Shown: positions 2,717 through 56,284 of the stretch, piece by piece | Layout: each line of letters begins with the position of its first letter | Numbering within the stretch: the first letter of the stretch is position 1 | IMG/VR virus record: IMGVR_UViG_3300032236_001613 | Span: 248,001 to 312,000 of that record | Length of the DNA: 64,000 nucleotides | Reading direction: 5' to 3' (one strand) | Program-made: the position numbers and the translations under genes | Notes under the pieces: generated by a model | Seen by the model: the letters and a program-made list of their open reading frames with translations, nothing else | The model's database searches: none | What the model was told of the DNA's origin: nothing

Positions 2717-4194
2717 TGGAACAAGATAATTTAACTGTTAAACAGAAAGATTATGCTGTATTTTTACCGGCAATATCTGGATTTTACGCTACCTTTATAG
2801 GAAAGCAGCGTATTAATAATGATTATGTTGACCCTGCAAGATTTCCTGCAGGGTTAACTGATATGGAACAACTTAATTGGTTAAATCCTACAAAAGCATT
2901 ATTTCCTTATAAATGGTCATTGTATTCAGGCGGTCATGCAAACTTAGATCTTTCTAAAAAAGATCCAAATGAAGATATGGTTCGCAACAGAGATCCAGGT
3001 AGCCTAATATTGGGCGACTCAGGTGGATTCCAGATTGCTAAAGGTCTTTGGGAGGGCGATTGGCATGCTAATTCAGGATGTCCAAAAGCACAGCAAAAAC
3101 GTGAAGCAGTTCTTAAATGGCTCGATGGTATAGCCGATTATGGAATGATCCTCGATATCCCAACATGGGTTATTCATGATAAGGTAGCTAATTCTAAAAT
3201 CGGTAATTTTGCAAATTCACAAGAACTTGTAGATGCTACAAAATTTAATAACGATTATTTCATTAATAATCGTAAAGGTGTTAAAGAAGGTGGCGCAAAA
3301 TTACTAAACGTATTGCAAGGCGATAATCACACTGCTGCCGATACTTGGTATCAGACAATGAAAGTCTATTGCGATCCTAATGTCTATCCTAATCGTCACT
3401 TCGACGGATGGGCAATGGGTGGACAAAATATGTGTGATGTTCACTTAGTGCTAAAGCGTTTAGTTGAGTTAAGATACGATAATTTGCTACAACAAGGTGT
3501 TCATGACTGGATGCACTTTTTAGGAACTAGTAAACTAGAATGGGCTGTACTACTTACAGTTATACAAAGAGCTGTTAGAAAATATGTTAATCCTAATTTT
3601 ACTATTAGTTTTGACTGCGCAAGTCCTTTCTTAGCAACTGCAAATGGGCAAGTATATCATCATATTGATTTACCTAATAAAAAGAAATGGTGCTATCGAA
3701 TGAGTCCAATTGCTGACGATAAAAAGTATTCAACGGATACTAGAAACTATAGAGATGCAGTTCTACAAGATGGATTAATTTATCATTTCGATGAGAGTCC
3801 AGTAAGTAAAATTTTACAAATGAAAGATATATGCTATTATAAACCCGGAGACCTAAATAAAGTAGGTAAAGAAGGAAAGACTAGTTGGGATAGCTTTAGT
3901 TATGCTCTATTGATGAGTCATAATGTTTGGATGCATCTTACTGCGGTACAGGAAGCTAACAGAAAATTCGATGCTGGTGATCATCCTGCAATGATGCGAC
4001 GTAGTACTGGCGACGAAGAATATTTTGAAGATATTGTTGAAGCTATCTTTGCTGCACCTGACAAGGAAACTAGTTTAGAAATTATTGAAACATATAGCGA
4101 TTACTGGATGGAAATTGTTGGTACAAGGGGATTTAAAGGTAAAAAAACCGTAAATTCAAACACAATGAAAAATGCATTATTTGAGGAAGTTTAA
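2716..4194 (+). CDS. dpdA: tRNA-guanine transglycosylase-like DNA base-exchange enzyme (DpdA family)
   Basis: TGT motifs LGDSGGFQ, MILDIP, VLQG, MHFLG, SFDCASP; clustered with folE, queD and queE. Confidence 0.8.
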   Translation: MEQDNLTVKQKDYAVFLPAISGFYATFIGKQRINNDYVDPARFPAGLTDMEQLNWLNPTKALFPYKWSLYSGGHANLDLSKKDPNEDMVRNRDPGSLILGDSGGFQIAKGLWEGDWHANSGCPKAQQKREAVLKWLDGIADYGMILDIPTWVIHDKVANSKIGNFANSQELVDATKFNNDYFINNRKGVKEGGAKLLNVLQGDNHTAADTWYQTMKVYCDPNVYPNRHFDGWAMGGQNMCDVHLVLKRLVELRYDNLLQQGVHDWMHFLGTSKLEWAVLLTVIQRAVRKYVNPNFTISFDCASPFLATANGQVYHHIDLPNKKKWCYRMSPIADDKKYSTDTRNYRDAVLQDGLIYHFDESPVSKILQMKDICYYKPGDLNKVGKEGKTSWDSFSYALLMSHNVWMHLTAVQEANRKFDAGDHPAMMRRSTGDEEYFEDIVEAIFAAPDKETSLEIIETYSDYWMEIVGTRGFKGKKTVNSNTMKNALFEEV

Positions 4195-51390: not shown

Positions 51391-51816
51391 GTGACTTGGT
51401 TCTATCAAGAACAAATTGTTACTGAACTGCCCGAAGATTGTGTTGGATTTATATATCTTATTACTAATACAATCTCGGGCCGTATGTACGTCGGAAAAAA
51501 ATTGGCTAAGTTTAGTAAAACCAAATATAAAACAGTAAAACTTAAAAACGGCAACAAGAAAAGAAAAAAAATTAAGAGCAAAATAGATTCAGATTGGCAA
51601 ACATATTATGGCTCCAGTGATGAACTATCAAAAGATATAGAAAAATTAGGCAAAGAAAACTTTCGAAGAGAAATATTACATTACTGTACTAGTAAGGCAC
51701 AAACATCATATCTCGAAGCAAAAGAACAATTCGACCGTCGTGTGTTAGAAACCAATGAATATTACAATGGTCACATACGTGTTAGAATCCATGGCTCACA
51801 TATAATCAAAAAATAG
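51391..51816 (+). CDS. Stand-alone GIY-YIG nuclease
   Basis: GFIYLITNTISGRMYVGKK, YYGSS, FRREIL, LEAKEQF, YYN. Confidence 0.85.
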   Translation: MTWFYQEQIVTELPEDCVGFIYLITNTISGRMYVGKKLAKFSKTKYKTVKLKNGNKKRKKIKSKIDSDWQTYYGSSDELSKDIEKLGKENFRREILHYCTSKAQTSYLEAKEQFDRRVLETNEYYNGHIRVRIHGSHIIKK

Positions 51817-53007: not shown

Positions 53008-53226
53008 TTAGAAGAAAGGTAGTCCACTTTCCTTAGTAGTTTCTAAGTTGTTTTCGATGATCTTACTAATAACCGATCGATCCTGATAGTCTAGCTGATA
53101 TGCTTCGGTAATAGTTACACCACCACGCATAAACCAGCAAATTCTAAATAGTTCATCTTTAATGGCCTTTGTTTCTTTTTCTAAGTCTTGTGATAACTGG
53201 TCAATTTCATTAAGACTAAGAGACAA
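53008..53226 (-). CDS. gp51-like baseplate hub assembly protein, probably the -1 frameshift extension of the gp26-like ORF
   Basis: Only a TTG start with no RBS; lies in the -1 frame of the upstream ORF behind T TTT TTC. Confidence 0.6.
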   Translation of the reverse strand: MSLSLNEIDQLSQDLEKETKAIKDELFRICWFMRGGVTITEAYQLDYQDRSVISKIIENNLETTKESGLPFF

Positions 53227-53231
53227 AAGCC

Positions 53232-54092
53232 TTACCCGAAAAAAGTTGCAGGATCGAATACAATAGGAATCTCAATATCAGCAGTTGATCCAAGTGCAAT
53301 CATTTCTTCAGATGCTTGAACTCGTAAAGGTTTGATAGAATTTTGTTCTCTTAGAAGATCTATATGATCTTTAATAATGTTAAACATACTTCTGTCACAG
53401 TTTTCTATAAATTCTTTTATAAATTCTTGATCAGTTACTACTCCTGATGTAGTTTCAATAGCTACTATAGAATCAGTAATTACATTTAGTGTAAGGTCAG
53501 TTAATTTATTAAAGCTCTTTTTAAATAATTCAGTTTTTTCTTCCTCGCTTAACTCATTATCGTTAACTAAATTAAAAATTCTTTGAGTTTCAAATGTTTG
53601 GCTAGCAGCTTGAGATAACTTTTTATAATTTAATGGGCGTACATGTACTTTTAAATTTGTAGATATTTCAATTAACTCGTTCCATTTAACATTAGAATAT
53701 AAGCTATCGATAATTTGTTTTAAATCTACAGAATATGCAGCTTCGATACCTTTAACTGTTACATTAGCATCCATTTTTTCGCCATAAGTAGCTAATCTTA
53801 TTGCTACTAAAATAATATCTAAATCAATTTGGGGACATTCCCATGCATTTATTACATTAGGTAAACAACTTTGTATAACATCAACTACAGCCTGTCCGTT
53901 TAATAGTGCATCAGGAGTTTTTAAAATTAACTCATCTTTAGCAGTCATGGAATAAACCGGGTATTCACCATTTGCGCTAACATTTAAAGATCCTTCAGGC
54001 CAATAATTTCCGTTACTTGGAAACCGAATATAAATCTTTGGTTGCCTCATCATGCCCATTAAGGGATTGATTTTTTGAGGGGAATTTTGCAT
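53232..54092 (-). CDS. Baseplate hub assembly chaperone (gp26-like)
   Basis: IRFPSNG, MTAKDELILK, DLDIILVAIRLATYGE, ends F..ATFFG; GGAG RBS. Confidence 0.75.
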   Translation of the reverse strand: MQNSPQKINPLMGMMRQPKIYIRFPSNGNYWPEGSLNVSANGEYPVYSMTAKDELILKTPDALLNGQAVVDVIQSCLPNVINAWECPQIDLDIILVAIRLATYGEKMDANVTVKGIEAAYSVDLKQIIDSLYSNVKWNELIEISTNLKVHVRPLNYKKLSQAASQTFETQRIFNLVNDNELSEEEKTELFKKSFNKLTDLTLNVITDSIVAIETTSGVVTDQEFIKEFIENCDRSMFNIIKDHIDLLREQNSIKPLRVQASEEMIALGSTADIEIPIVFDPATFFG

Positions 54093-54166: not shown

Positions 54167-56284
54167 ATGGCACCAGTATCGGGTACATTCGGAGATCAAC
54201 AAGTAAATCTTGAAAATGCAGCTACAGAAGCTACATTACAAAAATTACTAGTTGCTATTACCGCAACTAGCAAAGAAGCTGCGGATGCTGTTGCTAAAAT
54301 GGCAAAAAATGCTGGATTAGATCCAGAAAAAGTTAAACTTACAACAGCGTCTTTAACTGAATTAGAAAAATCTGCTGCTATTTTAGGTGGTGCATATGCT
54401 GGGTTAGAATACGCCAGTGATCAGTTAAAAGCTAAATTAACAGCCGCTGCAGGTCTTGTTGGTACTTTTACTTCTGGTACTGGCAAAGCTAGTGATTTAT
54501 TTGGAGCTTTAGGAAAATTACCTGGACCTTTAGGCCTTGTCGGTACAGGATTTCAATTAGTATCTCAGTTTCAAGAACAACTTTTAAAAAGTTATCAAGA
54601 AATAAGTGCTTCGGGTGTTAATTTTAGCGGTAGTCTTATACAAATGCGAGTAGCTGCATCTAGCATGTACTTGTCAATGGACCAGTTTAGTACTTTAGTA
54701 AAAAAGAATTCTGAATCATTTATTAATCTCGGCGGTGGAGTTGATAAGGGATTTCAAACTTTTTCTAGATTAAGCAATAATTTGATTAATAGTCAACTAG
54801 GTGATCGTTTACTATCGTTAGGATATAGTTTTGAAGAAATAAATCAAGGATTAGCTAGCTATATCGGAATGAGTGGACCACGTAGGGCCATAGACTTAGC
54901 TGATGAAAAAACTAAAGCAGCAATACTTACATCGTCGTCTGAATACTTAGAAAATTTAAATGCATTATCTGAAATTACTGGTAAAAGTCGAGACAAACAG
55001 CAAGAAGAGCTAGATGCTGCTAGTAAAAATGCTGCTTTTCAAGCTAAACTAGCAACTATGTCGGAGGACGAACGTAAAAAAGCATTAGCAGGAATGGCAA
55101 ATGCATTAGCAATCGGTGGAAAAGGTGCTGTTGATGCGTTCCAATCTAAGTTAATGGGAATAGCACCAGATAAAGCCGGTGCCTTATTCCTTGCTACTGC
55201 AAGTAATGCAGCAAGAGTAGTTGAAGATTCTGTTGATATGGTTTATAATACTAGTATTGGTGTAAAACAAATGGCTAGTACTACATTAAGAGAAGGGCTC
55301 AAAGCTGCTGGTCTTGATTTTCAAAAATTTTCTAATCAAACATTATATGCAATTATAAGACAAGGCGGACCACTCGCTGATAGCTTACAGCAATTAGGGA
55401 TTACAGCAAACAAAGCATCTACTATGACTGAAGAGCAAATACAGCAGATAATTGATAAAGCTGATGCCGATAGTAATGCTGCTGCCGAAGCTAGAGAAGC
55501 AGCCGAAAATCAAAAAGAAATTATGAAGATGGGACAAGAGTTATTAAAAGATTTAATGCCTATTTTCCGTGATTTAAAACCTTTAATACCTGGATTTTTA
55601 AGAAGTGTTACAGATATGATAGGGTTAATTAATAAAATTCCTGGTGGTTTAACAACATTGCTCGAAGCTATCGTAGCATTTTCTATTGGATCGAATGTGC
55701 TTAAAGGAGCATCTGCAGTTAAAAGTCTTATAAACGCCGGAGGTGCTGCTGCTGCTATTGGAAAAGAAGTTCCGGTTCTTACCGAAGCAGTTACTGCCGG
55801 TAAGGTTGCAACTAGCGCCGCTACCGGTACCGGGTTATTGGCTAAAGGCTCTGCTAAGTTGGGCGGTAAAATGCTATCTAAATTCATACCTGGTATTGGA
55901 TTACTTGCTGGCGGAGCTGATGCCTATATGAGATTAGGAGAAGGAGATTATTTTGGAGCAGGACTAGCAGCAGCAGGAGGACTTGCCTCGTTAATACCCG
56001 GTGTTGGCGGAATAGTAGCAGCTGGATTTGACGTAGCAAATTTAGCAAGAGACTTGCATAAAAAGTCTGACGATAATAAAAAAGAAGAAAAATCCAAAAA
56101 AGATGATGCAAGCATACTTGATAATAAGGATGACGATATTAATAAAGAATTAATAACCGAATTAAAACGGTTAAATACAATATCCGAAAATATGCTGCAT
56201 ACAATGCAACTAGTATCAAACGATATGAAACGCAGTGTTAGTGCTATTAATGGGTTAAACAAAAATTTATATCCTGTGAGTTAA
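54167..56284 (+). CDS. Tape measure-like protein
   Basis: Ala/Gly/Leu-rich helical sequence with hydrophobic Gly-rich C-terminal segments; adjacent to the chaperone gene. Confidence 0.65.
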   Translation: MAPVSGTFGDQQVNLENAATEATLQKLLVAITATSKEAADAVAKMAKNAGLDPEKVKLTTASLTELEKSAAILGGAYAGLEYASDQLKAKLTAAAGLVGTFTSGTGKASDLFGALGKLPGPLGLVGTGFQLVSQFQEQLLKSYQEISASGVNFSGSLIQMRVAASSMYLSMDQFSTLVKKNSESFINLGGGVDKGFQTFSRLSNNLINSQLGDRLLSLGYSFEEINQGLASYIGMSGPRRAIDLADEKTKAAILTSSSEYLENLNALSEITGKSRDKQQEELDAASKNAAFQAKLATMSEDERKKALAGMANALAIGGKGAVDAFQSKLMGIAPDKAGALFLATASNAARVVEDSVDMVYNTSIGVKQMASTTLREGLKAAGLDFQKFSNQTLYAIIRQGGPLADSLQQLGITANKASTMTEEQIQQIIDKADADSNAAAEAREAAENQKEIMKMGQELLKDLMPIFRDLKPLIPGFLRSVTDMIGLINKIPGGLTTLLEAIVAFSIGSNVLKGASAVKSLINAGGAAAAIGKEVPVLTEAVTAGKVATSAATGTGLLAKGSAKLGGKMLSKFIPGIGLLAGGADAYMRLGEGDYFGAGLAAAGGLASLIPGVGGIVAAGFDVANLARDLHKKSDDNKKEEKSKKDDASILDNKDDDINKELITELKRLNTISENMLHTMQLVSNDMKRSVSAINGLNKNLYPVS

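Follow-up and report, generated by a model that had tools for sequence, protein, structure and literature searches.

A jumbo phage very probably makes a short and a long version of its T4 gp26/gp51-type tail-hub assembly chaperone from a single gene, through a programmed -1 ribosomal frameshift. The frameshift is inferred from sequence signals and their conservation in about 100 related phages, whereas other relatives, apparently including T4, use two separate genes. The gene lies on the minus strand of a 64,000-nucleotide stretch (hereafter the window) of IMG/VR record IMGVR_UViG_3300032236_001613. It ends ACT TTT TTC GGG TAA, with T TTT TTC in X XXY YYZ register. Most ribosomes would stop at this TAA and release a 286-aa protein. 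A fraction would slip back by one base, stalled by an RNA stem located 6 nt downstream, and would continue in the -1 frame to give a 361-aa protein.

Table 1 Features of the frameshift locus, in window coordinates.
Feature	Position	Strand	Description
0-frame gene	53232..54092	-	ATG start; 286 aa, short product; PF12322, gp26/gp51-type baseplate-hub assembly chaperone
Slippery heptamer	53244..53238	-	T TTT TTC at the conserved C-terminal Phe-Phe
Spacer	53237..53232	-	6 nt, GGGTAA, contains the 0-frame stop codon
0-frame stop codon	53234..53232	-	TAA
Stem-loop	53231..53164	-	Stimulatory structure; loop of about 50 nt with inner pairing
5' arm of stem	53231..53223	-	GGCUUUUGU
3' arm of stem	53172..53164	-	ACAAAGGCC
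Possible start codon	53226..53224	-	TTG inside the 5' arm; would begin a 72-aa ORF
-1 frame extension	53238..53008	-	76 codons plus stop; C-terminal domain of the long product (285 + 76 = 361 aa)
-1 frame stop codon	53010..53008	-
Neighboring gene	54167..56284	+	705 aa, divergently transcribed; candidate tail tape measure / hub protein

Conservation of the slippery site and the -1 reading frame

The initial annotation had proposed a -1 frameshift at T TTT TTC that fuses the gp26-like protein to the downstream ORF, and our analysis supports this central claim. Reading from the heptamer in the -1 frame gives RVRLLSLSLNEIDQ..., and the junction peptide is as originally given. However, the downstream ORF, described there as lacking an ATG or ribosome binding site of its own, has no ATG but does have a possible TTG start. 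The heptamer alone is no evidence for recoding, as TTTTTTC occurs 31 times in the AT-rich window against 35 +/- 6 expected. The significance comes entirely from conservation, the codon patterns and the downstream RNA stem.

All 85 metagenomic or IMG/VR relatives examined (5 IMG/VR and 80 metagenome loci) and all 12 GenBank jumbo phages examined have NNT TTT TT(C/T) at the same Phe-Phe with the extension in the -1 frame; the last base is T in three of these. The 12 phages are Atu_ph07, Phosso, PA5oct, Serratia BF, 121Q, RaK2, Vibrio 2.275.O, Xoo-sp13, SCTP-2, RsoM2USA, RAS14 and Yen9-04. Identity of the N-domain to the window protein falls to 24%. Elsewhere in the same ORFs Phe is encoded by TTT 82% of the time, so TTT-TTC is expected for about 15% of Phe-Phe pairs. 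The codon preceding the pair ends in T in 78 of 78 sequences across six different amino acids. Homopolymer runs are error-prone in sequencing and in-frame versions of the gene do exist, but an assembly error or a decaying gene is very unlikely and is refuted by the comparative data: the frame relation recurs in 97 independent assemblies and isolates, and the in-frame versions belong to distant lineages (23-34% identity) with different junction codons rather than being one-base variants.

Selection acts on the -1 frame immediately 3' of the heptamer. In 75 of 75 unique sequences the first -1 codon encodes Arg, as CGT (39), CGC (18), CGG (12) and CGA (6), while the overlapping 0-frame residue varies among V, A, G, D and E. 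The rare TTC codon (18% use) is always the second Phe codon, as a CGN Arg codon in the -1 frame requires. The 0-frame stop lies 1 to 8 codons after the heptamer in different phages, and in three loci in which it is lost, the -1 peptide R-x-R-L-L is kept.

Alternatively, the extension could be a separate small gene, translated from its own start by coupling or re-initiation after the gp26-like stop, without any fusion protein. GenBank records annotate it in this way in 121Q, Serratia BF, Vibrio 2.275.O, Xoo-sp13, Phosso and Atu_ph07; none of the 12 records inspected, several from phages considered for therapy or biocontrol, annotates the site as a frameshift. In Atu_ph07 and Phosso an ATG overlaps the stop. 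The TTG at extension codon 5 is present in the window, preceded by an AAGG at 3 nt, and in 60 of 75 relatives, and an ATG occurs at extension codon 2 in 9 of 75. Some independent initiation cannot be excluded in those phages. Nevertheless, we consider this explanation very unlikely. The first ATG, GTG or TTG in the extension frame is at codon 31 or later in RaK2 and in seven metagenomic lineages, and PA5oct has none within 40 codons. The codons upstream of any start (Arg, x, Arg, Leu) are under protein-level selection, the TTG is replaced by TTA or CTA in 15 of 75 sequences and sits inside the conserved stem, and gene callers give versions of 58, 70, 72 or 75 aa. Moreover, in lineages without the frame change the domain exists only as a C-terminal fusion.

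A covarying stem downstream of the heptamer

A 10-12 bp stem begins 6 nt after the heptamer and shows compensatory changes. The spacer is 6 nt throughout the alignment, and RNAalifold found the stem unprompted. Of all cells, 94.3% are paired against 84.6% when shuffled (0 of 500 shuffles reach it) and 33-52% when the partner columns are slid. The covariation score is 0.279 against 0.107, and three pairs each show 15-36 double changes. In the window the fold has an MFE of -20.3 kcal/mol (z = -2.4). Stems at the same spacing occur in Atu_ph07 (z = -6.6), Phosso, PA5oct, 121Q, Vibrio, Xoo-sp13 and SCTP-2, whereas Serratia BF, RaK2, Yen9-04 and RAS14 show no convincing downstream structure.

The stem also bears on whether the same fusion might be produced by RNA polymerase slippage on the T6 run, with one extra U in some transcripts. 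The site is a homopolymer run, which is longer in RsoM2USA (T9), Xoo-sp13 and RAS14 (T7), and its conservation is also what this model predicts. However, known transcriptional slippage sites appear usually to be runs of 7-9 or more, and six T is short. The strict X XXY YYZ register and the conserved covarying stem at exactly 6 nt, the classical ribosomal stimulator with no role in polymerase slippage, make this explanation very unlikely. A similar arrangement appears to operate in E. coli dnaX, where A AAA AAG is followed by a stem-loop at about 6 nt. There the slip appears to lead to early termination and a shorter product, while here it would extend the protein.

One recoded gene or two paralogs

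The 0-frame protein matches PF12322 T4_baseplate at 32.2 bits (cut-off 24.5) and phrog_150 'baseplate hub' at E = 7e-14, while closer relatives score 86-100 bits. PHROG and Pfam scans of the extension alone gave nothing for the window version; the 121Q-type extension falls in phrog_18291, function unknown. The extension has 268 homologs in the large protein database and 445 HMM hits among cluster representatives. Eighteen of the top 150 HMM hits are 319-351 aa PF12322 proteins from other lineages with the extension fused in frame and no slippery site at the junction. One of them gives an AlphaFold model with pLDDT 94.7 and pTM 0.90 over its whole length, whose structural neighbors are T4-like baseplate hub assembly proteins. 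A shape search recovered only the N-domain.

In all five fused lineages with enough flanking DNA, a short PF12322 paralog that simply stops lies immediately upstream. These tandem loci of uncultured phages (L111, L113, L114, L116 and L117) carry the same extension domain (HMM E-values from 1e-13 to 1e-21) and the same divergent large neighbor gene. The window protein resembles both paralogs of L111, the one pair compared (E = 4e-46 and 5e-26), more than they resemble each other (2e-11). In contrast, the 328-kb window genome and eight frameshifting phages have one PF12322 gene each.

T4 has two, gp26 (short) and gp51 (long), transcribed divergently. Both are listed as hub assembly chaperones, their roles still being described as 'hub assembly chaperone' and 'essential protein of unknown function', and gp51 is absent from the virion (PMC3004832). 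PF12322 covers gp26 1-206 and gp51 1-201, which leaves gp51 a 48-aa tail. T4 gene 26 ends at the same Phe-Phe but as TTC TTT, which is not slippery. T4 also makes gp26' from an internal in-frame start, for which no counterpart was seen here. The 72-76 aa downstream ORF is not gp51-like on its own, as the initial annotation had it; BLAST found no alignment to T4 gp51. Rather, it is the whole fusion that has the architecture of gp51. Homology of the extension to the gp51 tail is plausible but only weakly supported. hhalign gave P = 3e-4 and a probability of 39%, with a score of 22.8 against a column-shuffled null of 9.7 +/- 2.0 (0 of 200 shuffles reach it), after P = 0.0055 and 6.6% with a narrower profile. 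HMM scores are 5-8 bits, always in the same register at the extreme C-terminus, and the full-length alignment runs end to end, but a BLAST alignment (E = 0.015) prefers another register.

Relation to other tail assembly chaperones

The two products would share the PF12322 domain, and only the long one would carry the small helical C-terminal domain. The pair probably acts like lambda G/GT or P2 E/E+E', with a fixed ratio of a plain chaperone and a chaperone with an extra docking domain working on the central hub / tape measure during tail assembly. The chaperone and tape-measure role is transferred from T4 genetics. As in lambda G/GT, P2 E/E+E' and Mu gp41/42 (Xu, Hendrix and Duda 2004), a -1 slip on a heptamer near the 3' end of the gene is predicted to give two products with a common N-terminus, and the arrangement is conserved across very divergent phages. 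The comparison to G/GT made in the initial annotation holds for the way the gene is expressed, not for family membership. No tail-chaperone Pfam or PHROG hit was obtained, a profile search of PDB sequences found nothing, and Foldseek of the pLDDT 94.7 model found no PDB match at E below 0.06. The extension is also only 76 aa.

The statement that the gene lies next to the tape measure gene rests on a lead only. After its own unnamed clusters, the nearest named clusters of the 705-aa neighbor by protein features are tape measure families (PF20155, PF10145; score 0.93). Its RaK2 homolog carries an old annotation as similar to a tape measure protein, and its PA5oct homolog is a virion protein detected by mass spectrometry. 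Synteny is kept in frameshifting and two-gene lineages. However, the neighbor has no Pfam hit, and no match to the T4 gp29 family was found in the window genome. Furthermore, the neighbor is transcribed divergently, whereas lambda G/GT lies between the tail tube and tape measure genes, on the same strand and immediately upstream of the latter. The flanking genes here are a 237-aa unknown and the portal gene.

To our knowledge, the conserved frameshift of tail assembly chaperone genes has not been found in T4-like phages, and we found no report of the present case in the searchable literature. It offers a natural experiment in which one requirement for two products is met either by recoding or by gene duplication, and a testable model in which T4 gp26 is the short and gp51 the long form of one chaperone. 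About as likely as not, T4-type contractile-tail phages have a G/GT-like chaperone pair built on an unrelated fold. In this hypothesis the ancestral PF12322 gene made both forms by frameshifting, and in several lineages, among them the one leading to T4, a duplication replaced the frameshift with two genes. This would explain why T4 needs both gp26 and gp51 and why no frameshifted tail chaperone has been found in T4-like phages, and it would show that the need for a fixed ratio of short and long chaperone is general across tail assembly and has been met by different means.

A DNA-level search of the phage collection returned only a short, irrelevant match. Two CxxC knuckles (a putative zinc ribbon) are seen in most PF12322 members, a common feature rather than a strictly defining one. 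The window protein and its freshwater family have lost all four Cys, and the short paralogs in L111, L113, L114 and L117 have lost the C-terminal CxxC as well.

Conservation and codon usage at the candidate slip site

The window is part of a 328,068-bp viral record with an estimated completeness of 92% and derives from a T4-related jumbo phage. As evidenced by profile searches, the region carries gp46/47-like nuclease genes, a T4-type portal and a prohead protease as well as a segE-like GIY-YIG homing endonuclease ORF with a GTG start (PF19835, E = 1e-32), which lies between the gp46/47-like nuclease genes and the gp26-like gene. The gp26-like gene encodes a protein of 286 aa matching PF12322 'T4_baseplate' above the Pfam cut-off and phrog_150 'baseplate hub', and ends ACT TTT TTC GGG TAA. 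The -1 frame is open from 11 codons before the heptamer T TTT TTC and runs 76 codons past it. The initial annotation, which proposed a programmed -1 frameshift at this heptamer into the downstream ORF, is right in its coordinates and in its junction peptide. Two corrections apply, however. A TTG could start a 72-aa ORF within the extension, and the heptamer by itself means nothing here, because TTTTTTC occurs 31 times in the window against 35 expected.

Coordinates of the gp26-like gene, its candidate recoding signals and related features
Feature	Sequence	Strand	Position
segE-like homing endonuclease ORF	window	plus	51391..51816
gp26-like 0-frame ORF	window	minus	53232..54092
Heptamer T TTT TTC	window	minus	53244..53238
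Stop codon of the -1 frame	window	minus	53010..53008
Possible TTG start of the 72-aa ORF	window	minus	53226
Stem, 5' arm	window	minus	53231..53223
Stem, 3' arm	window	minus	53172..53164
Divergent 705-aa ORF	window	plus	54167..56284
Tandem short and long PF12322 paralogs	L111		411-2389
Tandem short and long PF12322 paralogs	L113		820-2744
Tandem short and long PF12322 paralogs	L114		196-2114
Tandem short and long PF12322 paralogs	L116		1959-3790
Tandem short and long PF12322 paralogs	L117		4931-6914
Stem with alternative 3' partner	L095		1178-1292
Run of nine T	L108 (Ralstonia phage RsoM2USA)		around 2268
Gene 26'	L009 (T4)		3803-4090

Using tblastn with the 76-aa extension we obtained matches in Agrobacterium phage Atu_ph07 and Sinorhizobium phage Phosso that ran across the end of their 'baseplate hub' gene in the -1 frame, and both phages read CAT TTT TTC. 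The N-domain has homologs in 94 phage records, essentially the RaK2 / 121Q / PA5oct / Atu_ph07 group of jumbo myoviruses. Of these we inspected twelve—Atu_ph07, Phosso, PA5oct, Serratia BF, 121Q, RaK2, Vibrio 2.275.O, Xoo-sp13, SCTP-2, RsoM2USA, RAS14 and Yen9-04—and every one has NNT TTT TT(C/T) at the conserved C-terminal Phe-Phe, an extension of about 71-80 aa in the -1 frame that is open from the heptamer, and a 0-frame stop anywhere from 1 to 8 codons after the heptamer. Similarly, five IMG/VR loci and 80 metagenome loci, mostly from lakes and 47-58% identical to the window protein, all have NNT TTT TTC and a 75-76 aa extension; a single apparent exception (locus L043) was an artefact. 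These 97 independent occurrences exclude a sequencing error. None of the inspected GenBank records annotates a frameshift, and several omit the downstream ORF or start it at an internal Met.

In order to determine which frame is under selection, we analyzed 75 unique sequences of the window's family. The codon that follows the slip in the -1 frame is Arg in all 75, spelled CGT in 39, CGC in 18, CGG in 12 and CGA in 6, while the 0-frame residue over the same bases varies among V, A, G, D and E. The next -1 codons give x-Arg-Leu-Leu. In three of the related loci (L080, L092 and L095) the 0-frame stop has mutated and the 0 frame runs on for three more codons, yet the -1 peptide is unchanged. Elsewhere in the same ORFs Phe is encoded by TTT in 82% and by TTC in 18% of cases. 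Nevertheless, the second Phe of the heptamer is TTC in 78 of 78 sequences, as an Arg codon in the -1 frame requires, and the preceding codon ends in T in 78 of 78 sequences although it encodes six different amino acids.

The downstream ORF might instead be translated from a start of its own. However, the second -1 codon is ATG in only 9 of 75 sequences and otherwise CTA, ATA, GTA, TTA, CTG, GCA or TCA, and the TTG codon of the window is TTA or CTA in 15 of 75. The first possible start in the extension frame is at codon 31 or later in RaK2 and in seven metagenomic lineages (L040, L042, L045, L051, L061, L064 and L076), while PA5oct has none within 40 codons. Gene callers accordingly report versions of this ORF with 58, 70, 72 or 75 aa. 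Separate initiation is contradicted by these start-less lineages, by the selection upstream of any start and by the natural in-frame fusions described below.

A covarying RNA stem downstream of the heptamer

An alignment of 76 sequences starting at the heptamer yielded, without any prompting, a 10-bp consensus stem by RNAalifold that begins after a 6-nt spacer. Counted as a 12-bp helix, 94.3% of cells are paired, compared with 84.6% in shuffled controls (0 of 500 shuffles reach the observed value) and 33-52% in controls with slid partner columns. The covariation score is 0.279, compared with 0.107 for shuffled and 0.035-0.080 for slid controls. Three pairs carry most of the compensatory changes: columns 21/77 (GC 60, AU 14, UA 1), columns 22/76 (UA 25, AU 15, CG 11, UG 10, GU 7, GC 1) and columns 23/75 (AU 30, CG 30, UA 5, GU 1). 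In the window the fold is -20.3 kcal/mol with z = -2.4, and the candidate TTG start lies inside the 5' arm. The L095 lineage has lost the usual 3' partner of the stem and pairs CCAGACTCT with AGAGUCUGG closer in, which gives a shorter loop at the same spacing.

Atu_ph07 and Phosso have longer perfect versions of the same stem, and PA5oct, 121Q, Vibrio 2.275.O, Xoo-sp13 and SCTP-2 have other stems at the same spacing, while Serratia BF, RaK2, Yen9-04 and RAS14 show nothing convincing. RNA polymerase slippage on the T6 run cannot be excluded from sequence alone, but it does not explain the covarying stem at 6 nt. In RsoM2USA the slip site is a run of nine T followed by an 11-bp hairpin about 14 nt downstream, which could favour polymerase slippage or a shifted slip position in that phage. 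Overall, our confidence in the frameshift itself is high, although slippage is inferred from the sequence comparisons.

Natural fusions, gene copy number and relation to T4 gp26 and gp51

A profile of the extension searched against 1.84 billion cluster representatives gave 445 hits at E up to 0.001, most of them small ORFs. Of the best 150 hits, eighteen are proteins of 319-351 aa with the domain at the very C-terminus. These are distinct lineages of PF12322 proteins, 23-34% identical to one another, in which the extension is in frame across a junction of the type ...LDLD...F-R-x-K-L-I...EE-I, and their junction codons are not slippery. For one of them, P0255, an AlphaFold model that includes the extension has a mean pLDDT of 94.7 and a pTM of 0.90, consistent with a single folded polypeptide.

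In all five such loci with enough flanking DNA (L111, L113, L114, L116 and L117, from uncultured phages), a short PF12322 paralog of 276-319 aa lies immediately upstream on the same strand, and two shorter contigs hold only the 3' end of an upstream gene at that position. These phages have tandem short and long paralogs instead of a frameshift. Three of the five short paralogs still end NNT TTT TT(C/T), and in L111, the one checked, the -1 frame closes after two codons, which may be a relic of a former slip site. The window protein resembles both the short and the long paralog of L111 (E = 4e-46 and 5e-26) more than those two resemble each other (2e-11). Copy numbers agree with this picture, with one PF12322 gene in the window genome, one in each of eight frameshifting phages and two in T4.

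PF12322 covers residues 1-206 of T4 gp26 and residues 1-201 of gp51; gp51 is therefore the same domain plus a 48-aa tail, which the phrog_150 profile includes. The database tags gp51 homologs (proteins P0125-P0216) besides PF12322 with a second Pfam family, PF28602, which probably describes this tail. T4 gp26 ends ...KEFFELL at the equivalent Phe-Phe, encoded TTC TTT, which is not slippery, and gene 25 follows it. T4 also makes gp26' from an internal in-frame start, giving the C-terminal 95 aa of gp26, and thus already produces nested products from this gene family by a different route. Aligning a diverse extension profile with the gp51 tail using hhalign gave P = 3e-4, a probability of 39% and a score of 22.8, against a column-shuffled null of 9.7 +/- 2.0 (0 of 200 shuffles reach the observed score). 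HMM scores are low, 5-8 bits, but always at the extreme C-terminus, and the full-length profiles align end to end. We consider this homology plausible but unproven. The review by Leiman et al. lists both gp26 and gp51 as hub assembly chaperones and calls gp51 essential, of unknown function and absent from the particle (PMC3004832).

Our literature searches found no report of a frameshift in this gene family. The mechanism is of a known kind, but here it sits in a new protein family and clade, and it suggests an explanation for the T4 gp26/gp51 pair. The reading of gp26 as the short form and gp51 as the long form, working like G/GT, is one we hold with only moderate confidence.

Putative client and features of the gp26-like protein

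The divergent 705-aa neighbor has no Pfam domain, but four observations point to a tape-measure-like role. Its nearest named clusters by protein features are tape measure families, the RaK2 homolog was annotated as tape-measure-like, the PA5oct homolog is a virion protein detected by mass spectrometry whereas the gp26-like protein carries no such note, and the neighborhood is conserved. About 100 of its C-terminal residues hit peptidase and endolysin PHROGs. However, no T4 gp29 homolog was detected in the genome, and the assignment of this neighbor as the client is therefore an inference.

The PF12322 fold has no solved relative and is not a member of the known tail-assembly-chaperone families; the resemblance to G/GT lies in how the gene is expressed and in its probable role. 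The gp26-like protein of the window and its whole freshwater-metagenome family have lost the four cysteines of the two CxxC knuckles, which Atu_ph07, 121Q, RaK2 and T4 gp26 keep. A zinc ribbon, if that is what the knuckles form, is therefore dispensable for this family.
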